From: Macrostomum lignano
Taxonomy: Eukaryota
Direction: 5' to 3'
Length of the DNA: 64,000 nt
Assembly: GCA_002269645.1 (NCBI GenBank)
Contig: NIVC01000544.1
Coordinates: 62,001 to 126,000 of the forward strand
Shown here in pieces: positions 10,392 to 53,100 of this stretch. The first letter of the stretch is position 1, and each line of letters opens with the position of its first letter. The position numbers were made by a program, and so were the translations under genes. The notes beneath the pieces are model-generated. The model was not told the origin of the DNA and made no database searches. It saw nothing but the letters and a program-made list of their open reading frames with translations.

Positions 10392-12635
10392 TTACAACAA
10401 CAATAACAACAACAACAAAATACGCGACCCCGCATGCAAAGTCACAGTGAGAGCAGGGCGCGTCAGATGGCGCGCCGCAGAGCCTGGGAGCGAACAAAGT
10501 CCGCTCCGTTGGCAGTGTCGGGCGCCCTGGCGTCGCACAGCAGGCAGTCCACGTATCGACGGGTTCGGGCCTGACCCCGCCTGAACGGACCCTGCAAGGT
10601 GAGCAGCAGGACGTCCTGAACAGGTTGGGGGCAGTAGCCCTCGGCCCGGATCACGTGGCCAGCCAGTTGAAGTCGCCGCCGGCGCAGGATGGTGGACGGG
10701 CGCTGCAGTTTGGCCCGATCGTACAGGGCCTCGGTCCCGACGCTCTCGTCAGCTCGAAAGGCCGCACGGAGCAGCCCTGAGTGCGCCGAGTCCAGCTGCC
10801 GCTCCAGCGTAGCCGTCAGCGTCCACGTCTCGGCGTTGTATAGCAGGACGGTTTCGACCACCGCCTGCCACAGCCGAGCCCTCTGGCGGTCGGGCAGCGC
10901 TTCGGACTGGAGGACGGCTCGGATTGAAAAGTCCTCTGCGCCGTTGGAGGTCCTCTTCCACGTGGGGCACCAGACCGCCGAGGTAGGTGAACCGCTGGCA
11001 GCGTGCGAGCCTGGTCGTCTGCCCATCTGCGCCGCGGCACGTCAGGTCCGCTGTGATGCCGGCCGGCACAGTCAGCACCTCGGTCTTCAGCGTGTTGACG
11101 ATCAGACCGACGCTCGATGCCACCTCGACCAGCCTGTCGATCTGGCGCTGGGCGCCTTCAACGGATTACAGTCGTTTCGGTGACAAGACGTTTCGGTGAC
11201 AGTCCTTTCGGTGACAAGCAAAAGTCATTTCGGTGACAAGAAAAATACAATTTTAGTTATAGCCATTCTGTCTTTAAACAAAAAATTACTTAGAAAATCT
11301 TAAGGGATATTGAGCCTAAATTTTTATATTCTTTAAACAGTTAAGTATTTCTGTATTTAATTTTGTTTATTTACAATTATAGAGTTGCGGTCTTTTGAAT
11401 TATGTTTTCCAATTTAAACATGCAAAAGCGTCGACGAGTGAATATCTCCGCCTTTCTCGTGGTCTGCATTTCATGAGGATTCTCTCTAGGTTTATGGTTT
11501 ATGTGTCTGAACACTCTGGGACAATTCAAAACGATCTGCACAGGAAGAAAACAATAAAATTAGTTTGCTTTCTTTTCTTAAATATATTCTTTCGACGAAA
11601 CTTTTTAAATATATTACGAAACATAAATCTTAACAAAATAACTACAACTGAATATTATGAAACGCCTCTTATCACTAAAATAACAATACTCATGAAATCT
11701 TTGATTTTTCATTGAAAATGAAGTGTGTCTATCACAATTGCAACTTGTCACCGAAACGACTATTTGTCACCGAAACGTCTGTCACCGAAACGTATTGTCA
11801 CCGAAACGACTGGTACCCCCTTCAACGGACGAGGACAGGAGGGCGAGGTCGTCGGCGTAGCCAAGCACGCTTAGGCGCTTTTCGCCGTGGCGGCGACCGA
11901 TGCGTCTGCGCAGCAGGAAGCCGTCATTAGCCGAGGGGAGTGCGGTCCGAAGCACCCAGTCCAGCAGCAGCACGAAGAGGAACGGCGCTAGCATGTCGCC
12001 CTGCAGAACTCCTGATGAAGTATCAAACAGGTCAGACAGGCCGTCCGCCGTCACCACAGCAGCTCGAGTATCGCAATACAGCGCCATGACAGCGTTGATT
12101 AGCTGCTGGGGTACCCGGTAGGCTCGAAGGACAAAGGGGAGCGCGGCTCTCAACACCGAGTCAACGAAGACAATTATCAGCGTAGACTGGCGGATACGCG
12201 CCTCCTCGATGACACGGCGGAGTGCGAGGATCTGTGTCACTGTACCGCGTTGCGGCCGGAATCCGTTCTGCTCGTACCGCAAGTACGTGTCCAGCACCGA
12301 CTGCAGACGATCGAGCAGCAGCCGGTTGAAAAGCTTCACGGTGCAGGACATCAGCGAGATCCTGCGGTGGTTTTTCTTCCGCGTTGTCCCTGCCTTCGGT
12401 ATCGGCACGATGTGCGCGACGGTCCACTCGGTAGGCGCAGGAGCGCCGGCGAGCACGCGGTTCATGACGCCTGTGACCTGGGAGGCCACACAGCGGAGCC
12501 GCAGCGCTTCAACCGGGACTTCGTCGGGGCCGAGCGCCTTGCCGCCTGATGTTTTCCGAGCGAACAGCACAACGTCCTCCGTGGAGACTGGTCTGGTGCA
12601 GAAGTCCTCCTCAGCCTGGAGCGGCGTGTCCAGTG
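10392..12635 (-). mobile_element. 5'-truncated RTE-clade non-LTR retrotransposon, split by a DNA transposon
   Basis: RT motifs GPDEVP, WTVAHIVPIPK, QNGFRPQR, GVLQGDMLAPFLF and YADDLAL (ORF 11782-12570). They continue after the insert as VGLIVNTLKTEV...FTYLG and LLYNAETWTLT...QLAGHVIR. A (TTG)n-type 3' tail lies at ~10392-10416. GC content is much higher than the flanks. Confidence 0.9.
11163..11818. mobile_element. 656-bp non-autonomous DNA transposon with 8-bp TSD
   Basis: Direct repeat CCTTCAAC at 11155-11162 and 11819-11826. Ends read GGATTACAGTCG... and ...CGACTGGTACCC. Four TTTCGGTGACA units sit at each end in inverted orientation. Removing the insert restores the RT frame (SSSVEG|AQRQIDRL). 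Confidence 0.9.
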
Positions 12636-16315: not shown

Positions 16316-19300
16316 ATGGAACAGCAGGTACCAGCTGAAAATCCGATGAAGCAGCAACAAGAAGGCATCCAGCAGTCCGTGGAACAGCAGGGAACAGCTG
16401 ACGATCAAATGAAGCAGCAACAAGAAGGCACCCAGCAGTCCATGGAACAGCAGGGAACAGCTGACGATCAAATGAAGCAGCAACAAGAAGGCACCCAGCA
16501 GTCCGTGGAACAGCAGGGAACAGCTGACGATCAAATGAAGCAGCAACAAGAAGGCACCCAGCAGTCCGTGGAACAGCAGGGAACAGCTGACGATCAAATG
16601 AACCAGCAAAAAGAAGGCATCCAGCAGTCCGTGGAACAGCAGGGAACAGCTGACGATCAAATGAAGCAGCAACAAGAAGGCACCCAGCAGTCCGTGGAAC
16701 AGCAGGGAACAGCTGACGATCAAATGAAGCAGCAACAAGAAGGCACCCAGCAGTCCGTGGAACAGCAGGGAACAGCTGACGATCAAATGAAGCAGCAACA
16801 AGAAGGCATCCAGCAGTCCGTGGAACAGCAGGGAACAGCTGACGATCAAATGAAGCAGCAACAAGAAGGCACCCAGCAGTCCGTGGAACAGCAGGGAACA
16901 GCTGACGATCAAATGAAGCAGCAACAAGAAGGCATCCAGCAGTCCGTGGAACAGCAGGGAACAGCTGACGATCAAATGAAGCAGCAACAAGAAGGCATCC
17001 AGCAGTCCGTGGAACAACAGGGAACAGCTGAAGAACAAATGAAGCAGCAACGAGAAGGCACCCAGCAGTCCGTGGAACAACAGGGAACAGCTGAAGAACA
17101 AATGAAGCAGCAACGAGAAGGCACACAGCAGTCCGTGGAACAGCAGGAGCTGAAAGATAAAAAACGTGTAAATAAATCTTCAGCGGAACAGCACCTGGAG
17201 CAAGCTACACAGGAGGCGAGACGGCAACAACGAGTGAAGGAACCCATAGAAGAACAACACGAACAAGAGCAAGATGAGATTTACAATGAAGAACAAATTG
17301 AACGGGCGACTGAAATCCAGGATGTTGTCAAACATCTAGGATTGCAAGACGTGTTTCCATCTAAAATTTCTTTCCACGAGATTATTAAAATTTATAGTCC
17401 GATCACAGAGGCCAGTCAGTCTCATTCAGATAAAGAAGAAGATAGACACGATCGTCAACTTTCCGTTTCAACAAGAAGGGCGTGGAGACTGCTGCACGGA
17501 CTGATGGCCAACCGAGCTTCTTTCAGCGAAAACTCAGAGGACCAGGACGCTGAGCAATCACAGGAAACGGAACTTCATCCCACAGACATTTTGCTCGCCT
17601 GCTTCCTGTGCAGTGACAAGGAGCTGCAGCAAATCCTGTGCCAGCGGCTATTTACTTGCAAAATCGCTTTTCCCTTCGTCTACCCTGGAAGCGATGGTCA
17701 ACTTATCAGGAACCTGTGGAGCATGAGAGACATAGTGGTCGAGTACCGTGATGAGAACGACAAGCACGTGGAAGCGAATCTCGTGTCAGAAGGTCACTCT
17801 TTGTTTACTATTTGCTTTGCTAGAGTCGGAGAGCTCAAACTGTCCAAGTCTAAGATTGTAAACGGCTTGCTGAGCAGCAGCGGACACGACAGTTTCATTC
17901 ACCGCGACTGTGCTGATGGTGATATTGACAGGAGAATCTCCAATGGCGTCGTGGAAGCAACCATAAGTCTGCCGACGGGTAATCGAAAAAAGGAATTGAG
18001 CAGACCAGCGCTTGTGCTCAATCTCAGAGGAGACCTGGCATATTGCGAGCAGCAGATGCAGTTTATCTCTGAGGTTTCTCAAATTTCGGTTGTATTTGTC
18101 GAATTCGAAAGCCTACAAGAGCCATCATCACTTGATGTCATTGAAATGCTTTCAAAGACCACTAACGTCGTTCTTGTTGTTTGCAAACAAAAAGCGACGC
18201 AAAATCTAAGCAATGTGACGTCACAGAGGCTTCAGAAAGTTGTCAGTTCCACAGTCGACACGTTCAAGGCAAAGCGTCGCAAGAATCAAGCAGATTTGCT
18301 AAGCGACATTCGAACCTCAATTAATCAACTCATGTCAATCGAATTGCTGCAGAAGGATACGTGCAGCACCCCAATGGCGGCAAATATTTTAATGGATGAA
18401 GATGAGCCAGTGCTGGAGCTAAAAAAGCAGGCTGAACTGGCTTTCAAATTTATAAATGACACCGAAATTTCGCAATTCAAGCAGAAATTCCTGCCACTAC
18501 AGGACATCTGGCGGGAATACAGTCAGCTTCATAAAGAGGAAAACTCGTCGAAACAGTACCAGAAAGGTCTAGAACAGCTACAGTCTCAGAAAGCGAAACT
18601 CCGAGAAAAACAGTTTCAATGTTGCACTCAAATGAGCGAATTCGTCAAGATATTCATCGAGCTCCTGCAGAATATTTCGCAAAATTCTAAGTCTTCGACT
18701 GGACTGGAAAGTCGGCTCTTTCTGCAGTGGATGCGAATTTTTTTCGACCAGACTTCTCGAAAGCATCTACCGCTCATTTCAAAGAAAAGAAACGAGCTTA
18801 GAACTCAGCTGCAGGAGGCTGAAGGCAGGAGTGACAAGACGAAGGTGGATGAAATTAAAAAGCTGGTTCAGCAGGTCGAGCATAAAATCGTGAACTCGTC
18901 AGTCGGGTTGGAGAACGTATTCCGAGAGATCGGTCAGATGTTCGAGGCTGTGAAGGAGAACTCGAGTTCTGTCTCTCAAGGTCTTGCAGACGTGGCTCAG
19001 CGATTGCCTACCATGTTTGCTCAGCTGCTTTTATGGGGGATTCCGCTAGAGATTCTTGATGGAGATGCCAGCAACATCGCAACTTCGTGGGTGACAGCAG
19101 TACTAAAAGCGTGCCAAGATATGGTCGGTCAAAAGAGAATTTTCGTAATATCAGTACTTGGACTTCAGAGCTCCGGCAAGTCCACTTTGCTGAATACCAT
19201 GTTCGGTCTGAAGTTCCCAGTGAGTGCCGGTCGCTGCACCCGTGGGGCTTTCTTACAACTCGTCACTGTCGATGCATCTTCAGATCTGCCTTTTGATTAC

Positions 19301-22162
19301 GTTGCCGTCATCGACACCGAGGGTCTCAGAGCTCCTGAACTCGCATTGGAGAAGCATCAGCACGACAATGAGCTCGCCACGCTTGTCATTGGTCTTGGTG
19401 ACGTCACACTCATAAACATTAAGGGAGAGAATACAGCAGAGATGAAGGATATCCTACAGATTGCGATTCACGCATTCATTAGAATGAAGATGGCCAACAA
19501 AATGCGAGATCTGCACAGAAAATGCATTTTCGTGCATCAGAATGTGCCAGCTGTCGGAGCAAAAGAGAAAATGAGCGACGCTACCTTTAAGATGGAGCAG
19601 AGCCTCGACGAGATCACGAAGGAGGCTGCTGAAGGTGAAGGACTTAGTAACATCACGAGATTCTCGCAGATACTCGAGTTTAACAGAGATACTGACATAT
19701 ATTATATGCCCGATCTGTGGCACGGTGACCCTCCTATGGCACCTGTGAATCCAGGATATTCCTTCAAAGTCCAGGAGGTAAAGAATTCTCTTCTCAAGCC
19801 ACAGAACGCGCAAATGAAATCATTTCTCAGCTTCAATGACTTCTCTCTGCGAGTGAATGACATGTGGAAAGCCATCATGTCAGAAGATTTCGTCTTCAGC
19901 TTCAAAAACAGCATCGAGATGAAGGCCTACAATCAAATGGAGGCAGCTTACTTTGAACTTATCAATCAAATGGAATCTGAAATGAAAGACTGGCTGCATA
20001 AGACGGCGACAGTTGAGGTAAAAAAGTGTCAGTCTTCTCAACAGGTTCAAGAAACGCAAAGGAATCTGCAACGCCAACTTCGTACCCTGAGTGACAGTCA
20101 AGTTTCAGAAGCAGTTCGAAAGCTCGATAATTTTTTCAAGGAAAATCAGTACAGCGAATACACCATTCAGTGGAAGGAGAAGAAGATGAATTCCATCAGG
20201 AACTCTGCAGACGATAAGCAGAACGACATCAAAAAGAAGATCGATGGCTTGTGCAGAGTCCAACAGCTGCAGGCAAGTCAAAAAGAGAGTCAGACAGAGT
20301 GGAGGAAAATGATTATTACAAACGCAAAGCAACTTGCAGAGACTCTGAAGCCCGATGAGAATGAGCAAACGCTAAAAGATAAATTCGAGTCAATGTGGAG
20401 TACTGGGACTCAAGATCTGCCACAACACCAGGATGAGACAGTCACGTCTGTTGAGAACATAGTGATTGAGTTACTTAGAAAAAAATACCAGAAGGAATAT
20501 GAGACCATGAATTTTTACGTGGAGTGTTTTCCTTTTACAGCAAAAGGCAGCTCAGTGACACTCACAGGTGAGGAAGTCTTCAAGAAGATTGAGGTTAGTG
20601 AGATTCTTAATACAGAGCAACATAATTTTGCAAAAGACAAGAAGAAAAGAGGAGCTTCAAAAACAACTGATAAATCAGAATCTGAGCGAAAGACTGAGCC
20701 AAGACTAGTGGAACTCGATTTTTCTGCACTAGAAAAATGTGCCAATTTTTTTGGACTAAGCTCAAAAAAGGAAAAAGAGGCTGCAGCTGCACAGAAGGTC
20801 GCTCGCACTTGTCAGGATGCCATCGATTTAGTCAAAGTTGAAGTTGAACAACTTACCAATCAAAATCGATGGTTTGACTCAACTGACGCTACAAGAATTA
20901 TCGAGACAGTTTGCAGAGTACTGCAAGGATCCGCGGTGGCTCTCAGATCTGAAGGAATCAGCACGACTACAGCACTCGAAGTGAAACTCGTGGTCATGAG
21001 TCTCTCCTTTGCATATCCTACATTCGAGGCAGTTGACAAGAAGTTCAGAGAGGACCACAGCGTAAAGTCTGAGTTGCAAAAAATGAAGCAGCAGGTGTTC
21101 AACATGTTTAAAAACATGGTAAAGCAGCAGAAAGCCGCCAAGATCGCAGCCGACTTCTGCAGGGATCACGTTGCCAAGTTGACGAAGGAGGCCATTGCTA
21201 GGCAGATAACTGACAAGCTGAGACCCCACATTCTCAAGGAGATAGGCAACACTAAGTACTACCTTATCGTGAAGATGCTCAGTGACATGGCTAATCGAGA
21301 AGACTTTGGCGGAATATTACATTACGTCAAAGACTCTTATTCTGCTGCTCAAAAGTGGCTTCTGCCAGTGGTCAACAAGATGACATTCCATGACAAAAAA
21401 GAACTGGGAGGAGAATCGGTGACTTTCTATAGTCATGTCATTGAAGTTGAGCTGATGCACCCTATCTCTAAATGTGTTAAAGAAGCGGCTGTTGATGCTA
21501 AGAAATCAGATACCTCTCTCAAGTCATGGATTGAGAAATTTTGTGGCAGTGTGCAAAAAGAGCTGCCTATCACACAGGACGATCTGGCGCCCATGCTCGA
21601 ATACGACATCCAGAAAGTAGACGATGTAGTTGAGTTTCTCACGAAGGGAATCGCTGAAGTAGAGAAGCAGCTAATGGGTGAATATCGTCAGATGAAGGCG
21701 AACGACATTGATTGCCAGGGAGATTTGTGTTCAGGTCTTCTCAGCGACATGTGGGGCTGCAAGGAGCAATGTCCCTTCTGCAATGAGCCATGCTCGAAAA
21801 CATCGGCCGATTCCGACCACCACTGCATTCAGCACCGACCACAAGCAGTAAATGGCGTAAGGGAGCTTGGAACTTGCGAGGCGACGTTTGGAACTTGCGA
21901 ATACTATGTCAGCTCCGACTATGGTTTCCTCAATTTTCACGGAAAGAGTGGACAGTACAAAGAGTACAGAAAATATTTCTCGGATTGGACGATCAATCCG
22001 GATGCATCAAATACAGGTTCGAAATTCTGGATGTGGTTCTGCTGGCGCTTTGAGGATGAGATCAAGTCTAGACATGTTTTTAAGACGAACAGACTGCCTG
22101 GCCAGTGGAAAAATGTATCTAAGCAAGACGCCATCGATAGTCTAAGATTGTTGCTAAATTGA
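16316..22162 (+). CDS. GVIN1: Very large inducible GTPase (VLIG; GVIN1/URGCP family), 1948 aa in one large exon; may have an upstream exon
   Basis: G1 motif ISVLGLQSSGKSTLLNTMFGLKFPVSAGRCTRGAFLQL (~19150-19260), G3 motif IDTEGLRA, HDNELATLVIGLGDVTLINI, LWHGDPPMAPVNPGYS, FVFSFKNSIE, an N-terminal HPTDILLACFLCSD..LQQ..CKIAFP block, and a C-terminal GCKEQCPFCNEPC..HHCIQHRPQAVNG block. All are characteristic of VLIG/URGCP proteins. Confidence 0.93.
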   Translation: MEQQVPAENPMKQQQEGIQQSVEQQGTADDQMKQQQEGTQQSMEQQGTADDQMKQQQEGTQQSVEQQGTADDQMKQQQEGTQQSVEQQGTADDQMNQQKEGIQQSVEQQGTADDQMKQQQEGTQQSVEQQGTADDQMKQQQEGTQQSVEQQGTADDQMKQQQEGIQQSVEQQGTADDQMKQQQEGTQQSVEQQGTADDQMKQQQEGIQQSVEQQGTADDQMKQQQEGIQQSVEQQGTAEEQMKQQREGTQQSVEQQGTAEEQMKQQREGTQQSVEQQELKDKKRVNKSSAEQHLEQATQEARRQQRVKEPIEEQHEQEQDEIYNEEQIERATEIQDVVKHLGLQDVFPSKISFHEIIKIYSPITEASQSHSDKEEDRHDRQLSVSTRRAWRLLHGLMANRASFSENSEDQDAEQSQETELHPTDILLACFLCSDKELQQILCQRLFTCKIAFPFVYPGSDGQLIRNLWSMRDIVVEYRDENDKHVEANLVSEGHSLFTICFARVGELKLSKSKIVNGLLSSSGHDSFIHRDCADGDIDRRISNGVVEATISLPTGNRKKELSRPALVLNLRGDLAYCEQQMQFISEVSQISVVFVEFESLQEPSSLDVIEMLSKTTNVVLVVCKQKATQNLSNVTSQRLQKVVSSTVDTFKAKRRKNQADLLSDIRTSINQLMSIELLQKDTCSTPMAANILMDEDEPVLELKKQAELAFKFINDTEISQFKQKFLPLQDIWREYSQLHKEENSSKQYQKGLEQLQSQKAKLREKQFQCCTQMSEFVKIFIELLQNISQNSKSSTGLESRLFLQWMRIFFDQTSRKHLPLISKKRNELRTQLQEAEGRSDKTKVDEIKKLVQQVEHKIVNSSVGLENVFREIGQMFEAVKENSSSVSQGLADVAQRLPTMFAQLLLWGIPLEILDGDASNIATSWVTAVLKACQDMVGQKRIFVISVLGLQSSGKSTLLNTMFGLKFPVSAGRCTRGAFLQLVTVDASSDLPFDYVAVIDTEGLRAPELALEKHQHDNELATLVIGLGDVTLINIKGENTAEMKDILQIAIHAFIRMKMANKMRDLHRKCIFVHQNVPAVGAKEKMSDATFKMEQSLDEITKEAAEGEGLSNITRFSQILEFNRDTDIYYMPDLWHGDPPMAPVNPGYSFKVQEVKNSLLKPQNAQMKSFLSFNDFSLRVNDMWKAIMSEDFVFSFKNSIEMKAYNQMEAAYFELINQMESEMKDWLHKTATVEVKKCQSSQQVQETQRNLQRQLRTLSDSQVSEAVRKLDNFFKENQYSEYTIQWKEKKMNSIRNSADDKQNDIKKKIDGLCRVQQLQASQKESQTEWRKMIITNAKQLAETLKPDENEQTLKDKFESMWSTGTQDLPQHQDETVTSVENIVIELLRKKYQKEYETMNFYVECFPFTAKGSSVTLTGEEVFKKIEVSEILNTEQHNFAKDKKKRGASKTTDKSESERKTEPRLVELDFSALEKCANFFGLSSKKEKEAAAAQKVARTCQDAIDLVKVEVEQLTNQNRWFDSTDATRIIETVCRVLQGSAVALRSEGISTTTALEVKLVVMSLSFAYPTFEAVDKKFREDHSVKSELQKMKQQVFNMFKNMVKQQKAAKIAADFCRDHVAKLTKEAIARQITDKLRPHILKEIGNTKYYLIVKMLSDMANREDFGGILHYVKDSYSAAQKWLLPVVNKMTFHDKKELGGESVTFYSHVIEVELMHPISKCVKEAAVDAKKSDTSLKSWIEKFCGSVQKELPITQDDLAPMLEYDIQKVDDVVEFLTKGIAEVEKQLMGEYRQMKANDIDCQGDLCSGLLSDMWGCKEQCPFCNEPCSKTSADSDHHCIQHRPQAVNGVRELGTCEATFGTCEYYVSSDYGFLNFHGKSGQYKEYRKYFSDWTINPDASNTGSKFWMWFCWRFEDEIKSRHVFKTNRLPGQWKNVSKQDAIDSLRLLLN
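16346..17150 (+). repeat. Coding 63-bp (21-aa) tandem repeat, 12 full units plus 1 partial
   Basis: Unit MKQQQEG(T/I)QQSVEQQGTADDQ. Unit ATGs run from 16346 to 17102, which is 12 x 63 bp. Confidence 0.97.
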
Positions 22163-24773: not shown

Positions 24774-27486
24774 TCAATTCTGCTCCTCCAAGTCTGCCAG
24801 CGTGTCCTGCGGCAGCTCGCGGAGCTTCTTCAGTCTGTTCAGCACGTCATCGTCGCTGTCACCGAGCGCCTGCACTACCAGTTTGAAGGAGAAATCCCAG
24901 CAGCGCGTCACCAGGTCCGAGTCCAGCACGGGTTTGTGCCAGGGCTCGCTGCGGCATTTGTTGAAATATCTTCCGCTCTTGCCGCTGTCCGTTTCCAGGT
25001 CTGCGGCCCGGAGCAAAATGCCTTTGCAGCCTGGGTGGATTGAACAAATGGCAACAGATAATTCCCCATCCTCAACAAGATGATTCCCCATACTCAACAA
25101 GATGATTCCCCATCCTCAACAAGATGATTCCCCATCCTCAACAAGATGATTCCCCATACTCAACAAGATGATTCCTTATCCTCAACAAGATGATTCCCCA
25201 TCCTCAACAAGATGATTCCCCATACTCAACAAGATGATTCCTTATCCTCAACAAGATGATTCCCCATCCTCAACAAGATGATTCCCCATCCTCAACAAGA
25301 TGATTCCCCATCCTCAACAAGATGATTCTCCATTCTCAACAAGATGATTCCCCATCCTCAACAAGATGATTCCCCATCCTCAACAAGATGATTCCCCATA
25401 CTCAACAAGATGATTCCTTATCCTCAACAAGATGATTCCCCATCCTCAACAAGATGATTCCCCATCCTCAACAAGATGATTCCCCATCCTCAACAAGATG
25501 ATTCTCCATTCTCAACAAGATGATTCCCCATCCTCAACAAGATGATTCCCCATCCTCAACAAGATGATTCTCCATTCTCAACAAGATGATTCCCCATCCT
25601 CAACAAGATGATTCCTTATCCTCAATAAGATAATTCCCCATCCTCAACAAGATGATTCCCCATCCTCAACAAGATGATTCCCCATCCTCAACAGGATGAT
25701 TCTCCATTCTCAACAGGATGATTCCTTATCCTCAACAAGATGATTCCCCATCCTCAACAGGATGCTTCTCCATCCTGAACCAAATTATTTCCCATCCTGA
25801 ACCAGATAATTCCCCATCCTGAACCAGATAGTTCCCCATCCTGAACCAGATAATTCCCCATCCTAAACCAGATAATTCCCCATCCTGAACCAGATGATTC
25901 CCCATCCTGAACCAGATGATTCCCCATCCTGAACCAGATTCTCCATCCTAATCCAAAATCTACATTCTGAAGTTCATACATTTGTTCAATTCACCATATT
26001 CTACAGTAAAACTAATTATGTTGACAAGCACAAGGTACGCAATTATTGTGACACAATCTACCTTGTCGCGGCGACAGCATCATGCAGCGCATGCAGCACC
26101 TGAGACAAGGCCGACACGGGGCAATGCAGCCTCGAACAACGTGCCGGCCGATGTCGGTGCAAACCACACCGGGGTGCACAGCGTACACCATGGCCGTAGC
26201 GCTGGACAGCCGCCTCAGTGCGCTCCGGAGCCACAGGGCAAACAGACAGACCGCCAGCTTGCTGTTGCTGTAGGCTTTCATCTTCTTGTACGACTCCTCT
26301 GTCCAGTTGTTCCATTCGGACACTTCAAAGTTGCCGCGTTTGTAGACGGCGCCTTTGGTGAATTTGGGTTTGCACAATGCGTCACAGAATTTCAATAGAG
26401 CGCTGGATCAGAGCTCGTGATGCGAAAACGCTTTATTCCGCTAAACTCATATTAATAATCTTAATATATAATTGATTACACCTCCCGAAATTGGGCTAGA
26501 TGTGCAACCGACAGCTCAGCCGCAGCTATTTGCGCGGCGCATCTGAAGGCTGCGTACGGCTGTTCAGTTCAAGGGCTGGGGGGTCGCCACACACACCCTC
26601 AATTACCCCAGCTAATGCTGGCACCCAGGTGGATGAATTGAAGCAATGCAGAGTTAAGTGTCTTGCTCAAGGACACAAACTGTTTCAGTGGAATCGGGAA
26701 TCGAACCCCCGACCTTCAAGTAGTGAGTCCGATCGTTAACTACTAGGCTACAACCCCCTAGCTCAACTCACACACACGCTCACACAGGGTGCACAGCAGC
26801 ACTGACTTTCTAATCGTCAGGCATGTACACTCCCTGTGCCTTTGGGATTGGCTCCCAAGAGGGAGTGAGTCGCACGAAAACCCCGGCAAATGTTTGCTCA
26901 CAGCAAGTCTCAAATAACATCATAAGTAGTGTAAAATAAATTAAGATGTAATGCAATATTGTTTTCGGTAAAACGGTTCAATAAAACTTAATGTAATGGC
27001 TTTTTCACGGTTTTGTTCTCCCCGTTACTCACCTGTCACCAGAATGACCTTGGCACCCTGGCTGAGTTGACCCTTGGATAGAAGCATGCAGGTGAGCACA
27101 AAATGGCCCAAATGATTGGCAGCCAGCGTGGACTCCACGCCCTCTTTCGTCAGCTCAAAGGGCGCCCCGAATATGCCGGCATTGTTCACCAGGATGTCGA
27201 TGTGGGGCTCGGAGAAGCCTCGACAGAAGGCTGCAACGGATTTCACAAGCGATATGTCAGCGGAAACCAGGTGCAAATCGGCGGCAGGATGCTTCTCCCA
27301 GATTCGATCGCGGGCCAACTTGCCGCGCTCTAGCGATCGGACCAGCATGATCACCTTGGCCTGACGACGGGCGAATTCAAGGGCGGCCGCCTCACCGATG
27401 CCGCCGCTGGCTCCGGTGATGAGGACAACTTTACCGCTGAACTCCGTGTCAGTGAGGTCAGCCAGGGAGCGCGCTTGTTTGATCAT
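24774..27486 (-). CDS. Short-chain dehydrogenase/reductase, RDH11/12/13/14-like, 3 exons
   Basis: Model complement(join(27486..27033, 26352..26062, 25030..24774)) gives 1002 nt (333 aa plus stop) with phase-1 GT-AG introns. Motifs: TGASGGIG (TGxxxGxG), DILVNNAGI, ANHLGHF, YSNSK (YxxxK), VHPGVVCTDIGR, SPRQG|CKGIL, SGRYF. The exon-2 acceptor is inferred from homology and phase. Confidence 0.9.
25060..25945. repeat. 22-bp minisatellite (GATGATTCCCCATCCTCAACAA)n in SDR intron 2
   Basis: Period 22. The unit shifts to a ...CCTGAACCA variant after ~25770. Confidence 0.95.
26474..26762 (-). mobile_element. tRNA-derived SINE, family A
   Basis: Reverse complement of the copy at 44945-45220. Has A and B boxes and a central CCTTGAGCAAGACACTTAAC. 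Confidence 0.85.
26770..26890 (-). mobile_element. SINE fragment related to family B
   Basis: Shares TCGT(C/T)AGGCATGTACACT..CTGTGCCTT with the copies at 30688, 57343 and 59588. Confidence 0.5.
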
Positions 27487-28184: not shown

Positions 28185-29915
28185 GTGATTAGTCACTGTT
28201 GAACTGGAGTGATTAGTCACTGTTGAACTGGAGTGATAAGTCACTGTTGAACTGGAGTGATTAGTCACTGTTGAACTGGAGTGATAAGTCACTGTTGAAC
28301 TGGAGTGATAAGTCACTGTTGAACTGGAGTGATTAGTCACTGTTGAACTGGAGTGATAAGTCACTGTTGAACTGGAGTGATAAGTCACTGTTGAACTGGA
28401 GTGATTAGTCACTGTTGAACTGGAGTGATAAGTCACTGTTGAACTGGAGTGATAAGTCACTGTTGAACTGGAGTGATAAGTCACTGTTGAACTGGAGTGA
28501 TTAGTCACTGTTGAACTGGAGTGATAAGTCACTGTTGAACTGGAGTGATAAGTCACTGTTGAACTGGAGTGATTAGTCACTGTTGAACTGGAGTGATAAG
28601 TCACTGTTGAACTGGAGTGATAAGTCACTGTTGAACTGGAGTGATAAGTCACTGTTGAACTGGAGTGATATTATAAGTCACCATTGAACTGCACTAATAA
28701 GTCACCATTGAACTGGAGTGATAAGTCACCATTGAACTGGAGTGATAAGTCACCATTGAACTGGAGTGATAAGTCACCATTGAACTGGAGTGATAAGTCA
28801 CCATTAAACTGGAGTGATAAGTCACTGTTGAACTGGAGTGATTAGTCACTGTTGAACTGGAGTGATTAGTCACTGTTGAACTGGAGTGATAAGTCACTGT
28901 TGAACTGGAGTGATAAGTCACTGTTGAACTGGAGTGATAAGTCACTGTTGAACTGGAGTGATTAGTCACTGTTGAACTGGAGTGATAAGTCACTGTTGAA
29001 CTGGAGTGATAAGTCACTGTTGAACTGGAGTGATAAGTCACTGTTGAACTGGAGTGATATTATAAGTCACCATTGAACTGCACTAATAAGTCACCATTGA
29101 ACTGGAGTGATAAGTCACCATTGAACTGGAGTGATAAGTCACCATTGAACTGGAGTGATAAGTCACCATTGAACTGGAGTGATAAGTCACCATTGAACTG
29201 GAGTGATAAGTCACCATTAAACTGGAGTGATAAGTCACTGTTGAACTGGAGTGATTAGTCACTGTTGAACTGGAGTGATTAGTCACTGTTGAACTGGAGT
29301 GATAAGTCACTGTTGAACTGGAGTGATAAGTCACTGTTGAACTGGAGTGATAAGTCACTGTTGAACTGGAGTGATTAGTCACTGTTGAACTGGAGTGATA
29401 AGTCACTGTTGAACTGGAGTGATAAGTCACTGTTGAACTGGAGTGATAAGTCACTGTTGAACTGGAGTGATATTATAAGTCACCATTGAACTGCACTAAT
29501 AAGTCACCATTGAACTGGAGTGATAAGTCACCATTGAACTGGAGTGATAAGTCACCATTGAACTGGAGTGATAAGTCACCATTGAACTGGAGTGATAAGT
29601 CACCATTGAACTGGAGTGATAAGTCACCATTAAACTGGAGTGATAAGTCACTGTTGAACTGGAGTGATTAGTCACTGTTGAACTGGAGTGATTAGTCACT
29701 GTTGAACTGGAGTGATAAGTCACCATTGAACTGGAGTGACAAGTCACCATTGAACTGCACTAATAAGTCACCATTGAACTGGAGTGACAAGTCACCATTG
29801 AACTGCACTAATAAGTCACCATTGAACTGCACTAATAAGTCACCATTGAACTGGAGTGATAAGTCACCATTGAACTGCACTAATAAGTCACCATTAAACT
29901 GGAGTGATAAGTCGC
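28185..29915. repeat. 24-bp minisatellite (AGTCACTGTTGAACTGGAGTGATA)n with higher-order structure
   Basis: Period 24. A variant block GATATTATAAGTCACCATTGAACTGCACTAAT recurs at ~28668, ~29057 and ~29470. Confidence 0.95.
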
Positions 29916-30687
29916 TGTTAAACCAGAATTTCCTAGAATTCGTAAAGAAAAATTCCTTTAAAAAATTCATACAGTACTTCCATCCCGAAGAAAGTATTAA
30001 TTACAGCTCGCATATATTCTGACCCCTAAAGGCAAGCCTCAGTGTGCTAGCATATTGATAGAATAATTAACATAAATTCCATGCTAGCCTACAGAATTCT
30101 ATCTCCTGATCTGAAACAGGTCCTGCCGGTCCCACCGCAGTCAAATCCAAAGAAACTGAAACTATATTACCAGACTTCCGAAAAATATACCCAGCTTCAT
30201 TCCAGACTTTTGCAAAGACTCTATTTGACTTATATTATTTCGTAAAGTTGGCTTGAAGCCAAACTTTCAAGTCTTTTACCAGTTTTCATTCGAGGTAGGA
30301 GAGACCGAAATTTCATCGGCTAATCCTAGAGGCTTACAGCGGCAAGTGGGACAACCAATGACCACGTTTTTGTGGAGATACAGAGAGAGACGGAGAGCTG
30401 GTGGCATTCTCTGGCAAGTGCAGCATACAAGCTGTTCCTCAAAGCTGTCTCTGTCAACGATAGTACATCAGATCTGATATTGTCTGCTGCTCAAAAAGCC
30501 TGAATAAAAGTGCGCATGCTCGTAAGTGAAGTTTGTTGTAATTTTTTATCAACATCCACCGAAACAGATAATTTGCAGCAAAATACTAAAGTACTTCCGG
30601 AGATTATGAACTTTCGTGCAAAATGAAAATGGTCAACAGTTTTAGTTTCGAGTTTTTGAAGTTTTCAGCTTTTTTATTCATAGTAGA

Positions 30688-32685: not shown

Positions 32686-44657
<11,972 letters not shown>

Positions 44658-46084: not shown

Positions 46085-46720
46085 TTCTAAGTGCAGAAAG
46101 ACAGACGCCATGACAAACAGACACCAAGACAAACAGACACCAAGACAAACAGACACCAAGACAAACAGACACCAAGACAAACAGACACAAAGACAGACAG
46201 GCACCAAGACAAACAGACACAAAGACAGACAGGCACCAAGACAAACAGGCACCAAGACAAACAGGCACCATGACAAACAGACACCAAGACAAACAGACGC
46301 CATGACAAACAGGCACCAAGACAAACAGGCACCAAGACAAACAGGCACCATGACAAACAGACACCAAGACAAACAGACGCCATGACAAACAGGCACCAAG
46401 ACAAACAGACACCAAGACAAACAGGCACCAAGACAAACAGGCACCTAGACAAACAGGCACCAAGACAAACAGGCACCAAGACAAACAGGCACCAAGACAA
46501 ACAGGCACCAAGACAAACAGGCACCTAGACAAACAGACACCGAGACAAACAGACGCAAAGACAAACATACACAAAGACAGACACCAAGACAAACAGACAC
46601 CGAGACAAACAGACACCAAGACAAACAGACACCGAGACAAACAGACGCAAAGACAAACAGACACCAAGACAGACACCAAGATAAACAGAGACCGAGACAA
46701 ACAGACGCTAAGACAAACAG
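46085..46720. repeat. GACA-derived ~16-bp minisatellite, same family as 43155-44245
   Basis: Read directly. Variant units AGGCACC and GCCATG are present. Confidence 0.95.
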
Positions 46721-47170
46721 ACTATATATCTGATGATATAGACCATCATTCAGACACATAGCGGTATATAGCTACACATATTTTACAATTGATCAAGTCT
46801 GTTAACTCTGCAACATGTTCAAATTTCCACCCCGAAAGCATGCTGCGGTTAACAAGGTGGCAGCTATAATTTAACTCAAGCCATAACTCTTCCACTCTCT
46901 CCACAACCAGTTTAAGCTGGGGCATTGTGACGCAAGTTTGCATCACCCACAGAGAGCTGTGAATTACGTCACTTCGGGCTGGGATCTGAGCCACTTTAAC
47001 GTGTTGCTGAGTGCATGTTTCAACTATGTACATCGTCACCGGATGAATATTGTCCTTCAGCGTCCTTCTATTTCAGTAATCTGTTAGATTTTATGTACCA
47101 CGGAAGGCAAGTAACGTATTCAGGTGTACATGTTGCAAAAAGATCATCGCTTTTAGGATTTCGGAAGTTG

Positions 47171-50100
47171 TCAAAGGTCTGTCACAGGCCTAGTATCGAG
47201 TGCCTTCAAGTGGCTAAGACTCAACTCATCATCATTTGTATCTGGCGCCACTTCAAACGCTCCAAGACGAATTTCCGAGTAGCGACGGCGCTTCTTGTCG
47301 GCCGATGATGAGTCGGCCGACAACGAGTTTTGTCGATCGTAAATCGACGAGAGACGTCGCTCGATCAGTCGGTCAGAGCACGAGATTCGGCAGCTTTGGA
47401 TTATTGGACTAGTGACTTGGTTGCTTTCGTGCTCCACTAGAAAAGTCTGCAACTGCGGTTGCTGCTTCTGCTGTTGCTGCTCGTCAAATGCGTAGGCTGA
47501 CAAGGATTCCTGCGACTTGTTTGATGAGGCGGATAGTGCAGTATGTTGCTTAGATATTGGCTTATTTACTAACTTTTCAAGACTTTTTTAACGGGGTATA
47601 CAATTTGAACCTACATGTAACTGTGAAACTTCCACGAATTCTAATATCTAAGCAAACAGACACCAAGACAAACAGACACTAAGACAATTAGGCACCAAAG
47701 ACTACAGTTTCACAAGTCTATTTTTATTGTAAATTAGTTACCTCTTTTCTTTCGCGTTCCTGCCTCTCCATCTGTCGTTGATTTTCTCTATTCTCTTCCT
47801 CTAGCTCGCGTCGGATCTCCTTTTCTAGTTCTTCATCGTCGGACATCATTTTGTGCGATTCCTGGAATTTTTGGAAACGGTCATCTCATAAATAACCATA
47901 GTGGATAGTCCGAAGCCACAAAATAATCAATTGAAGCCACAGAAATCAGTGAGAAGTTGGGCCATAGAATAATTATTGATAAGTTGAGCCATAGAATAAT
48001 GATTGAGGAGTTGAGCCATAGAATAACCAGTGAGGAGTTGGGCCATAGAATAACCAGTGAGGAGTTGGGCCATAGAATATTCAGTCCGGGGAGGCGTTAC
48101 TGGGGGCCATAGAATATGTAGCAGGGAAAGTTGCTGGTGGCCATAACATAGCAATGGGCATATGTAATAATAAGAAACAATTTTCAGACAAACCTCAAGG
48201 TGCTTCATTAAAACAGCGACCACAACGTTAACGAGAACAAACTGGGCCATGAGAACAAAGACCACAAAGTAAATTGGCGCAATAATTGGCGATACGCAAC
48301 AATTTTTTATGCAATCATCGCTCCAATCGCATTTTTCTCGGAGGGTATCCTTCATAATGCCGTTCCAATTGTCGCCTGTAGCAATACGAAACAGAGTCAA
48401 AAATGCCATGCCAAAGTTCTCGAAGTGAGCGTGTCGACTCAGTCCGACGCACGGGTTGTCCAAGGAGCATTCTGAATTGATTGAAGCAATTCGACTTTTA
48501 AACGAATGTACTGCTGCTCCTAACAACGGCCCTGACTTTGGCATTGTCGAGCGGCAAATTGTGCACTTTATTTTAAGATCTATTTTACCAGACTAACGAT
48601 TCAGGCTCAATACATGTATAGTTAAAGTATCTAACGTGTTTCAAATATGCCGGTATACATTAATAATAGTATAATTGAATAACACATGCCCTATTGGGCA
48701 AATTTGCACCCGATAGCTCAGCCGCAGCTATTGCGCGACGCATCTGGAGGCTGCGTACGGCTGTTCAGTCCAAAGACAGGGTCGCCACACACACCCTCAA
48801 TCACCCCAGCTAATGCTGGCACCCATTTTACAGCTGGGTGAACTGAAACAATGCTTCAGTAATATCTAGGTTTCATCACAGTAAAACTCACGGGAGCTAA
48901 ATTCGCTTCTAAGTAACCTTTGTCGTTTCCCGTACTAGGTATTGAGTAGTCCCTGGACACAAATTGTTCCGAGTGGGTTGAGAATCGAACTCCCGGCCTT
49001 TCAGTCATGAGTCCGACGCTCTAACCATTAGGCTACAACCCCCCAGGCTTCAAACATTCGGGGATTGTCTAAATAAGAAGCGTTTTCAAGTATCTCCAAG
49101 CACTGGCTTATGCAACTGCAGACTTTGTTAGTTCATCAAAACCATAAAAATATTTCCCCACACCAAACCTGCAGCTCACCCAATCGACCGAACAGCTCGA
49201 CGCCCAGAGCGGCAAAGATGAAGAACAGCAGGAAGAAGAGCAGGCCGAGATTGCCAACCTGAGGCAGAGCCTGAATAACCGTGTCCAGCAGAGCTCTGAT
49301 GCCTTTGGCCATCTTCAGCAGCTTCAGGACTGCGGATTGATTGAAAGCGGAAGTGGTTTTGGTCGCTAGGTTGGTTAGAATGACTCCATATTATTCCAAA
49401 TCCGTGCTTTGCCAAAAATCAAGTAGAAAATGAGAAAAGCAAGCATTACCTCTGGCAATTCGAAGCACTCGCATAACGCGAATAATTGTCGGATTAATTG
49501 GAATAATTTTCGCTTCCATCTCTTCCAGGACAATTCCACTGACGGATAGAATAACTATGATGACGTCAAGCTGATTCCACCTGTAGAGCATATTTCGGAT
49601 GGCTTACAAGTGCGTTGTTTTGCAACTGCATAATTGGGCATTTGCTCGTCAAATAAATCACTCGTTGCAGTAATAACAAAATATCGAAAGCTAAAATTAT
49701 GGGTGAATTCGTTAACCTAGGTTTTTGCGGCTCATTTCCAGGATCTTGGAGCTTGGTACATAATTGTTGGGCCAGCCTGCATGCCTTTGTTGTCTTGAAA
49801 ACCTATTCAACAACACAAATTTGTGCCAAAATTTTCTGGATAGACCACATTAATTAAATGTGCAGTAGTTATAGATTATTATAAAACGTTTAAACAAAAT
49901 TCAGAAATTCTATTTTTTAGAGGCGGCTGTTGTGGAATTATTTACACTCAAAATCAACAACTTTTTAATTAAAAAAACTTTCAAACCGTTAATTCTGTTT
50001 GCTGCGCAAAATTAAATGCAATAAAAGTCAATATTATCGAAACGTCAAAGACGTGAAAGAAAGATCTAACCGTAGGAAGCAAGCAGGCAGAGGTGAAACA

Positions 50101-53100
50101 ATAAGAATTTTTTGTTGGCATTGCTAAAGAAAAATATTTAACTTACCTGCTGAACATTCAGCAATCAAACAATTGGCGTTTACGAGATAGCGCATCAGAA
50201 ACGGGGAACGGGTGGTGTACGTTAAAGCAATAAACAAATGTATGAGAGGAACATTAATTGAAGATAGGTGATTCAAATCGGGTGTATTCTCGAAGTCTAG
50301 ACTCGAAAAATTAGGGAACTTTTTGGAGAGAGAAAAAAACACAAATATGCTTCATACAGTGGTAGTAATAAATTAAAGCTCGAAGACAAATACAAAGACA
50401 AAGCCGGAACGTATTGTTTTAAATTTAAACAAAAAATATAACAAATCTGTTTCTAATTATTTATTATTGAATAATAGTGACGATTTTATTTGTCTCAATT
50501 GTTAATTATAATATAAACTATTATAATTAGCTATTTATTTATTATTATCTTAATAAGCCTTACCTGTCCATGAAGTACCGCTTGAAGCCGAGTGCGATAA
50601 TTTTAAAAGCCGCCTCAATGATGAAGACAGTTGTGAAAAAGTAGTTAGTAGCCTTCAAACCGAGTTCTAGTTCCTAAAGTTATAAAATTAAAAAACAGCA
50701 TGTTGATGGAAGTCTTTTAAACAATTCAAATTTCCTTGCTCCAACAAGACCGACCTTTGGCATTAGATAGAACTCCATCGCCATTGTGATAACATTCAGA
50801 CCAATTATGGTTGCAATTACCAGATCGAAGTACTTGCTATCTACCAGTTTGTGTATTCTGAGTCGCCATGGCGGGTAGGAACTCCAGTAGGGTCGTTCGC
50901 GGATTCCTGCGGTGTGTCAAGTGAGTAGATTTTATTTGCAACCCGCGTGCAAAAGCAATTGCATTTGCATTATTCTAATACACACTTAGTAGCTAAATGT
51001 TGAAATCAAGGAAATTTTTGTTTCAATCACACAAAAACCAGGCGCTTCTTCTGAGGTCATGACATCGCGGAAGCTAAATCAACGTACACTAGTAGACTAC
51101 TTCTGTTGCAGTCGAAGTTAAAACTTCCTTTTCAATCATATTCCAACTCGAAACGATATATTACGCCTCCGTCAGATCACAATGAAGAGTTTTCTAATCT
51201 CAGCACAAATTATAAATTTTCAGTAATTGCTCATTTTTAACAATCATTTATCACACTCCTTAAGACAGCCATTCCTGAGACAGCCATTCCCTAAGAGAGA
51301 CATAAGACACTCCTAAGACAGATATTTCCTAAGACACACCCAAGGCACTCCTAAGACATTTTTAAGACACACCTAAGACACTTCTAAGACACACTTAAGA
51401 CACTCCTAAGACACACTTAAGACACTCCTAAGACAGCCATTCCTGAGACACTCCTAAGACACTCATAAGACAGCCATTCCTGAGACACTTCTAAGACACA
51501 CCTAAGACAGCCATTCCTGAGACACTCCTAATCCTAAGACACTCCTAAGACAATAATTGCAAACAAATCAGATCAAACCCTAAGCTTTAAACGCAATAAA
51601 AGCTACTCACTTTTCCGTCGTTTCTCCATCCTTCTGGCCCTCTTAGCGGCCCGTCTGGCCTTCTCCTCTTTCTCCTGGCTAGCGCGGCACTTGTGAAAAT
51701 TTTCAACCACGACGCCGACGAACATGTTAAGTACAAAGAAGCCGACAAGTAATAGGAACGAGATGAAATACAATAGCAACCATTCGTTGTGGTTCTCCTT
51801 CGGTTGCATGTTCTCGCCCACAGCGTCTAAGCCAGTGTACATAATCTGCACCCAGCCATCTTTGCTAGACAGCACAAACAGAGCCATGAGTGCTTGGCCT
51901 AGATTGTCGAAATTGTACTTGTGCTTTATCCATTTGTTGCGCTTGTCAGCTAAACAGTCGGTGATGTTCATCACGTTGGATACGTCTGGTCCGTCGCAGT
52001 AGTAGAACTTGCCTTTGAATAGTTGGACGCCTGCGAATGTAGGGAAGGTAAAATTTTTAGACACGCATTAACAGAATATTACTGCGTGTATTCTCGATTT
52101 GAAACTTGTGTCTTCAGTTCAATGGTTCTTGGTTTAACTTCGTGTCTTCAGTTCAATGGTTCTTGGTTTAACTTCGTGTCTTCAGTTCAATGGTCCTTGG
52201 TTTAACTTCGTGTCTTCAGTTCAATGGTCCTTGGTTTAACCCCCGTGTCTTCAACTCAATGGTCCTTGGTTTAACTTCGTGTATTCAGTTCAATGGTTCT
52301 TGGTTTAACTTCGTGTCTTCAGCTCAATGGTCCTTGGTTTAACTTCGTGTCTTCAGCTCAATGGTTCTTGGTTTAACTTCGTGTCTTCAGTTCAATGGTC
52401 CTTGGTTTAACTTCGTGTCTTCAGTTCAATGGTCCTTGGTTTAACTTCGTGTCTTCAGTTCAATGGTCCTTGGTTTAACTTCGTGTATTCAGTTCAATGG
52501 TTCTTGGTTTAACTTCGTGTATTCAGTTCAATGGTTCTTGGTTTAACTTCGTGTCTTCAGTTCAATGGTTCTTGGTTTAACCTCGTGTCTTCAGCTCAAT
52601 GGTTCTTGGTTTAACTTCGTGTCTTCAGCTCAATGGTCCTTGGTTTAACTTCGTGTCTTCAGCTCAATGGTTCTTGGTTTAACTTCGTGTCTTCAGTTCA
52701 ATGTTTCTTGCTTTAACCTCGTGTCTTCAGCTCAATGTTTCTTGGTTTAACCTCGTGTCTTCAACTCCATATTTGATTGGGTATTTGATTAAATACTCTT
52801 TACTCAACCGGCCCATTACCGTTTTCCCCATTTTTCAATCAGACCTAAATATAGACTTACCCAGAATGCCGAATATGATGAAGAATGTGCAACAGATGAG
52901 CACAATATTGCCAATAGGTCTCAGCGAAGACAGCAGAGTCTGCACTACCAGCTTGAGTCCTGGCGCTCTACTAATAACCCTCAGTGGTCGCAAAGTTCGT
53001 AACAAACGAAACACCCTCAGAATACCGAATATTCTATTGCTGCTCCCAGCAATTAGAGTAATGAGGGCATCGATTAGGGACACGGCCACCAGAGCGCCGT

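Follow-up and report, generated by a model that had tools for sequence, protein, structure and literature searches.

A tandem repeat array probably encodes a disordered, Gln-rich head of a VLIG/GVIN-family giant GTPase in the flatworm Macrostomum lignano

Macrostomum lignano possesses a single-exon gene for a giant GTPase of the VLIG/GVIN family, the 5' end of which is occupied by a 63-bp tandem repeat array. The gene lies on contig NIVC01000544.1 (assembly GCA_002269645.1), of which we analyzed positions 62001-126000 (referred to here as the window, 64 kb in length; coordinates are those of the window unless another contig is named). The NIVC records represent the Mlig_3_7 assembly of M. lignano (PMC5730564). 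The array is probably a young coding minisatellite that encodes a disordered, acidic, Gln-rich N-terminal extension (head) of the GTPase. According to the mechanism that we propose, the 63-bp unit would have expanded recently inside the 5' coding end of the gene, via replication slippage or unequal recombination. The array would be translated in frame with the GTPase, and ~330 residues would thus be added ahead of the conserved N-terminus, namely an orphan 21-aa unit in 12.7 copies and, behind it, a charged linker of 53 aa. Such a head may at most be a length-tunable spacer or "bristle" that modulates the solubility, spacing or self-assembly of the GTPase, and it is possibly nearly neutral. 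There is no sign of a folded interaction domain or of an amyloid-forming signalling motif in it, and we found no evidence for a new signalling module; the undescribed innate-immune or allorecognition module that had been suggested originally has family membership as its basis.

The gene is one unbroken open reading frame (ORF; 16316-22162, + strand) of 1948 codons plus stop, with the array at its 5' end. The identical 1948-aa protein from the same contig is already deposited as an NCBI/UniRef entry, and its coding sequence (CDS) starts at 16316. The following features were found in this gene:

16316..22162, + strand: single-exon ORF, VLIG/GVIN-family giant GTPase of M. lignano (ORF list, Pfam, NCBI/UniRef identity).
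16316..16345, + strand: diverged half-unit (MEQQVPAENP) with the first ATG, the context of which is gaagaaATGg (start at 16317 according to Tandem Repeats Finder (TRF); sequence; ATG contexts).
16346..17101, + strand: 12 full 63-bp (21-aa) units, MKQQQEG(T/I)QQSVEQQGTADDQ (TRF, unit dissection, codon usage).
17102..17146, + strand: truncated 13th unit (MKQQREGTQQSVEQQ) of 15 aa, holding the last in-frame ATG ahead of the conserved body.
17147..17305, + strand: non-repeat, highly charged linker, aa 278-330 (codon usage).
17306..17572, + strand: conserved N-terminal segment of the VLIG body (VVKHLGLQDVFPSKISF...), at which homology to the paralogue and to vertebrate VLIGs starts.
17573..18430, + strand: URGCP-like domain, aa 420-705 (Pfam PF25496, E value 5.9e-60, 203.6 bits vs a cutoff of 27).
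18533..19762, + strand: URGCP-like/VLIG-type GTPase domain, aa 740-1149 (Pfam PF25683, E value 9.2e-126).
19160-19186, + strand: P-loop GLQSSGKST.
19313-19324, + strand: DTEG motif (G3).
21770..21841, + strand: conserved C-terminal Cys/His motif CPFCNEPC...HHCIQHRP, found in all full-length relatives (judged by eye).

Besides these domains, GVIN1 (PF25974) and GVIN1_C (PF26772) regions are matched as well (precomputed Pfam hits). By its URGCP, GTPase and GVIN domains, its intact motifs and its relatives, the encoded protein is a genuine member of the VLIG/GVIN family from a flatworm, in line with the original prediction of an invertebrate VLIG/URGCP-type GTPase. Its closest relative is an M. 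lignano paralogue (P0011, BOX15_Mlig002402; 41% identity over the entire body), followed by vertebrate proteins annotated as "interferon-induced very large GTPase 1-like" and by URGCP-like proteins (29-35% identity over about half of the protein). Two relatives are invertebrate-like, one from the Logan run SRR25445034 and the other from a TARA metagenome scaffold. About 30 relatives were retrieved; a full-length query was dominated by Gln-rich words and gave 10 matches, and the search was therefore made with the body only.

The BLASTP alignment with P0011 begins at aa 332 of the window protein and at aa 16 of the paralogue. The motif LGLQD.YP.KLSL is found near the N-terminus of vertebrate relatives too, and short vertebrate members of the family begin just a few residues ahead of it. 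Residues 1-330 thus form an accessory head. Pfam detects nothing in aa 1-419, so that no Death-fold or CARD head is recognizable, and no NACHT or NB-ARC domain anywhere in the protein. The idea that the N-terminal slot of VLIG/URGCP proteins often holds a CARD could not be confirmed: a CARD or Death domain is listed for none of the about 30 relatives, and our literature searches for VLIG with CARD or URGCP with Death domain returned nothing relevant.

The array itself (16317-17147) was described by TRF as 13.2 copies of a 63-bp unit with 96% matches, 0% indels and a score of 1501; that is, a period divisible by three is kept over 831 bp without any indel. With up to 3 mismatches allowed, the 39-nt core of the unit is found at 12 places, compared to 0 occurrences expected from dinucleotide-preserving shuffles, and is absent from the rest of the 64-kb window. 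The thirteen repeats proposed originally are approximately right, as there are 12 full 21-aa units with the consensus given at that time, a truncated 13th one and, additionally, the diverged half-unit at the start, which matches the 3' half of the repeat unit in 23 of 30 nt (manual count). The interval 16316-17330 that had been assigned to the repeat head is correct up to 17146; the remainder (17147-17330) is the non-repeat charged linker and the first residues of the body.

Five of the full units are identical to each other, and so are three others, the two groups differing by a single nucleotide in a Thr/Ile codon; eight of the 12 full units thus represent two haplotypes one nucleotide apart. 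The centre of the array is homogenized, and the 3' units 11 and 12 are diverged and share private changes (DD to EE, Q to R). Homogenized centres and diverged edges are what unequal exchange produces, which points to a recent expansion, and the original description of the repeat as near-identical, in-frame and recently expanded holds. Eight sites vary among the full units, seven of them non-synonymously, so that there is no sign of purifying selection on the unit, as fits a recent and weakly constrained expansion. Taken together, this is an in-frame tandem unit of high identity within a CDS, with a length that is a multiple of three, as is typical of coding minisatellites. Length polymorphism of the array at the window locus is plausible; the collections that we searched hold one copy of this gene only.

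The array looks coding. On the + strand, the VLIG frame is the sole open frame across it. A log-likelihood ratio of codon usage, for which the gene body was the training set, reaches +10.9 bits per unit in this frame vs -5 and -12 in the other two. The 159-bp linker (46% charged residues in the 48-aa stretch measured) is also open in the VLIG frame only, with a ratio of +13.6 there vs -30 and -38 outside this frame. The head contains 15 in-frame ATGs, and the 134 codons that follow the last of them have none: between 17102 (the last unit) and 17504 (inside the conserved segment), including the linker, no in-frame ATG is present, and a complete body therefore needs a start within or ahead of the array. 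With G at both -3 and +4, the first ATG lies in a strong Kozak-like context. The ATGs with which the full units open have C at -3 and A at +4, which is weak. Translation presumably starts at the first ATG, as in the deposited CDS; the GenBank annotation of NIVC01 was built from a genome-guided RNA-seq transcriptome (PMC5730564). Judged from these observations, the head is likely translated. In this case, a tryptic peptide QQQEG(T/I)QQSVEQQGTADDQMK from the repeat unit and the N-terminal peptide MEQQVPAENPMK are to be expected. We did not accept the two antisense ORFs that run through the array (305 and 275 aa) as genes. They exist only because the unit lacks stops in those frames, and both stop within about 110 bp of the array edges; the sense frame runs on for 5 kb.

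In its composition, the array is rich in Gln (37%) and highly charged (24% charged residues), with a net charge of -35 (about -3 per unit; -0.13 per residue) and no aromatic residues. Each 21-aa unit contains two Gly and one Lys. With a mean normalized hydropathy of 0.29, the array falls on the disordered side of the charge-hydropathy boundary, and the GTPase body on the folded side. The head thus most likely represents a strongly acidic, Gln-rich extension that is intrinsically disordered. In a HMMER search of the head against 1.84 billion representative proteins, the protein itself was recovered (E value 3e-159). The next matches had at most 98 bits and 15-37% identity, and the three inspected were unrelated repeat proteins; a homologue of the 21-aa unit was not found among these representatives. 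Designed symmetric beta-trefoil proteins, which appeared in a PDB sequence search (E value 2e-5 and weaker), were dismissed as repeat-on-repeat artefacts. By these searches, the unit is an orphan specific to its lineage, and in evolutionary terms it belongs to a common type.

The M. lignano paralogue (proteins P0011 and P0035; loci L002 and L005-L007) has its own in-frame array directly ahead of the same conserved N-terminal motif. Its unit (48 bp or 16 aa, ETEGKGEDVVKDSSHE, 4-5 copies) is acidic and hydrophilic and is unrelated to that of the window gene. At locus L002 (NIVC01003103.1, 9762-10000), five units are present, the third of which contains a GAG-to-TAG nonsense codon; the body is intact, and the NCBI model begins right after the array. 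The other three loci (L005, L006, L007) have four open units each, and their body frames are broken in the assembly. The comparison of head arrays among paralogues that had been recommended originally thus revealed an array unrelated in sequence, with five vs four units among four genomic copies. Together with the nonsense codon, this implies that the head arrays in this family change in copy number and can be lost. The paralogue possesses, furthermore, an upstream mini-exon (ATGGCTGAGGGT...GCTGCAG, at about 9517-9640 of L002) followed by a 68-nt GTGAGT...TTCTAG (GT-AG) intron, in agreement with the N-terminus of P0035; the window gene has no obvious counterpart of this exon. Just upstream of the paralogue, an unannotated gene is located that is called with 350 aa in two copies and with 688 or 700 aa in the other two (L002 and L006 vs L005 and L007), and could be either a length-variable gene or a case of inconsistent gene models.

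Unrelated tandem heads are also present in fish and shark VLIGs (P0007, P0026, P0030) among the relatives retrieved: the catshark protein starts with 8/16-aa units of the TKSGTRQC type, that of a loach with SPQKDE-like units, and that of Prochilodus with about seven copies of an E/K/R-rich 35-aa unit that is clearly coiled-coil-like. Some of these heads could be gene-model artefacts. Other relatives bear N-terminal AIG1 or FN3 domains. As unrelated tandem heads recur in other VLIGs, the N-terminal slot of the family looks evolutionarily permissive, and the head of the window protein would be one more instance of this.

Could the array be mostly or wholly untranslated, i.e., be a 5'-untranslated leader or be bypassed by a spliced-leader acceptor or an internal transcription start, with the protein starting at a late unit ATG and having little or no head? 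As every unit has an in-frame ATG, any 5' end inside the array would still give a complete body, and M. lignano trans-splices 38.8% of its annotated genes (PMC5730564). In the same direction point the sole intact-body copy of the paralogue, which is headless through the stop codon in its array and the model of which begins just past it, and the fact that a 63-bp repeat with an open frame is nothing unusual (three of the six are open here). On the other hand, the deposited, RNA-seq-guided CDS begins at 16316, the single open + frame is that of the VLIG and is the one in which the unit is closest to the gene body in codon usage, no other ATG has as good an initiation context as the first one, and a period that is a multiple of three has been kept with zero indels across 831 bp. 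We consider an untranslated array unlikely for these reasons. The unit ATGs could also be used in addition to the first one and yield a ladder of N-terminally nested isoforms differing in head length, as had been suggested from the in-frame ATG at the start of every full unit. This observation is correct, and the 15 ATGs followed by 134 codons without one make such isoforms possible in principle; however, with a strong first ATG and weak unit ATGs leaky scanning should be minor (by the general Kozak rule, which may not hold for flatworms), and the ladder is highly unlikely.

The structure of a translated head is a separate question. The proposal that it is either a coiled coil or a disordered spacer was better in its second half. 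A Gln-rich helical or coiled-coil oligomerization module, a stalk with a length that tunes multimerization or reach of the GTPase, would agree with 21 residues being three heptads and with the coiled-coil-like head of the Prochilodus VLIG, and Gln-rich coiled coils exist. The single-sequence AlphaFold2 model of the head (no alignment) draws residues 10-148 and 174-284 as continuous helices as well. Nevertheless, the confidence of this model is low (predicted local distance difference test (pLDDT) 55-69, predicted template modelling score (pTM) 0.22, no confident fold), so that the AlphaFold check proposed for the repeat gave a low-confidence helix only, which is typical of low-complexity Q/E sequences modelled without alignment. 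Even when the heptad register is chosen most favourably, the a/d positions are filled by M, I/T and A, three of six at most being hydrophobic per unit, and otherwise by Q or S. The unit also contains two Gly, and its single Lys, at a net charge of about -3, offers no compensating salt bridges for a coiled coil. The stalk is thus improbable.

A polymerizing amyloid or prion-like signalling motif, similar to the 21-aa HET-s-type repeats at the N-termini of fungal NLRs, had been proposed for the head by analogy. The 21-aa unit, the 37% Gln and the N-terminal position on an immune-type NTPase agree with this, but the units are charged (24%, net charge -35 over the array) and have no aromatic, hydrophobic or Asn-rich core, and there are 12.7 copies rather than one; the hydrophobic core and the low net charge of a beta-solenoid-compatible pattern are missing from the array composition. 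The unit is found in no second protein among the 1.84 billion representatives and has no second copy in the window. The gene is flanked by a reverse-transcriptase fragment and by a short-chain dehydrogenase gene, and no NACHT or NB-ARC domain is present in its protein. In HET-s-type systems, one motif is located on the sensor and a matching motif on an effector, which is usually encoded next door; a partner motif was found neither in the window nor among the representative proteins. The charge, the missing aromatics and the lack of a partner motif and of an NLR contradict the amyloid proposal and make it extremely unlikely. The composition of the unit favours a disordered acidic extension over both an amyloid and a canonical coiled coil.

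Several observations nevertheless weigh against a young coding minisatellite for a disordered head. The long helices of the AlphaFold2 model, low in confidence as they are, leave room for helical or coiled-coil behaviour. The intact-body copy of the paralogue at L002 has lost its head via a nonsense codon, and such heads can thus be dispensable. Frame openness inside the array is by itself weak evidence, three of the six frames being open there, and the annotated CDS is the product of a pipeline. The unit has no signature of purifying selection, so that the head may be neutral. Finally, the window locus is known from one copy with no second allele, the variation of arrays being seen in the paralogue only. 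In a more far-reaching scenario, the independently born, copy-number-variable repeat heads would be a tunable and switchable module that governs how an ancient GTPase of cell-autonomous defence polymerizes or selects its targets, with the length set via unit number and an on/off switch via nonsense mutations or start-site choice. We regard this as very improbable; if true, an animal without an interferon system would have a device for diversification in the repeat slot.

The genomic setting of the gene is rich in repeats. Tandem arrays cover about 25% of the window (16.0 kb), and simple and tandem repeats make up 15% of the M. lignano genome (PMC5730564). Many arrays in the window consist of 20-100 copies of 14-35-bp units, and most of the other long ORFs in the window are artefacts of such arrays. 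Upstream of the VLIG gene (by about 4 kb), a retroelement fragment is located, and two short arrays with reverse-complement units, 11168-11245 (CGTTTCGGTGACAAGA) and 11745-11812 (TTGTCACCGAAACG), lie about 500 bp apart by this fragment; the inverted pair possibly represents element ends. Downstream follow the short-chain dehydrogenase gene, with a 22-bp x 40 array inside its span (25052-25939, presumably intronic), and two Ion_trans ORFs that are probably exons of a voltage-gated cation channel gene with array-filled introns. A second VLIG gene or a gene with a related motif was not found within the window. The features outside the VLIG gene are:

11782-12570, - strand: 262-aa ORF, reverse transcriptase RVT_1 (Pfam, E value 3e-17), retroelement fragment.
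24774-27486, - strand: short-chain dehydrogenase (adh_short) gene.
28185-29923: tandem array, 24 bp x 72.
34417-36566: tandem array, 22 bp x 97.
37032-38552: tandem array, 15 bp x 101.
43154-44244, 46101-46722 and 47653-47698: three arrays of one 16-bp unit (ACAGACACCAAGACAA) within 4.5 kb, apparently in introns of the - strand ion-channel gene.
47927-48544 and 51603-52064, - strand: Ion_trans ORFs (Pfam, E values 3e-16 and 1e-23).

The first biological function of GVIN/VLIG GTPases was described only in 2025, when human GVIN1 was shown to coat cytosolic Burkholderia (bioRxiv 10.1101/2025.03.24.645074). An apparently intact member of the family in a free-living flatworm amenable to transgenesis could serve as a model for giant GTPases outside the interferon system. 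A protein entry for the gene already exists; the gene is apparently unstudied as far as our searches show, a query for a Macrostomum very large GTPase having retrieved nothing relevant. A query for VLIG in amphioxus gave no relevant result either. The head is a modest addition to this. Together with four other unrelated examples, it suggests that the N-terminal slot of the family readily takes low-complexity tandem extensions, and the repeat heads could be used as a natural length series for testing the effects of extensions on assembly. If the head is neutral, the locus would be an example of the tandem-repeat load of M. lignano spilling into coding sequence.

Compared with known systems, the window protein shares with the vertebrate GVIN/VLIG proteins (mouse VLIG-1, human GVIN1) and URGCP the common domain set (URGCP-like, URGCP/VLIG-type GTPase, GVIN1 and GVIN1_C), and the P-loop, DTEG and C-terminal CPFC...HRP motifs are conserved. 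The coding sequence of mouse VLIG-1 is one very long exon, and the window gene is likewise single-exon. In contrast to the vertebrate VLIGs, it comes from a flatworm, an animal without an interferon system; GVIN genes have been described as present in most vertebrate genomes (bioRxiv 10.1101/2025.03.24.645074). Human GVIN1 has a predicted folded N-terminal domain, which an unstructured linker joins to the GTPase (same source), whereas the window protein has an orphan repeat of 21 aa as its head. Induction by infection or interferon, GTP hydrolysis and formation of a pathogen coat are known only for human GVIN1. The M. lignano paralogue (BOX15_Mlig002402) is also a long single ORF with an in-frame array ahead of the conserved motif; it differs in the 16-aa unit and in having the mini-exon and the intron. 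The likeness to the HET-s motifs of fungal NLRs is confined to the 21-residue period and the N-terminal place on an immune-type NTPase; the sequences are not similar, a partner motif and an NLR are lacking, and the units are many and highly charged. The array also resembles coding minisatellites (variable-number tandem repeats). These vary in allele length, and here such variation is seen in the paralogue array only; the period that is a multiple of three, the high identity of the units, the homogenized centre with diverged edges, the low-complexity hydrophilic product and the repeat-rich genome all agree with this class.

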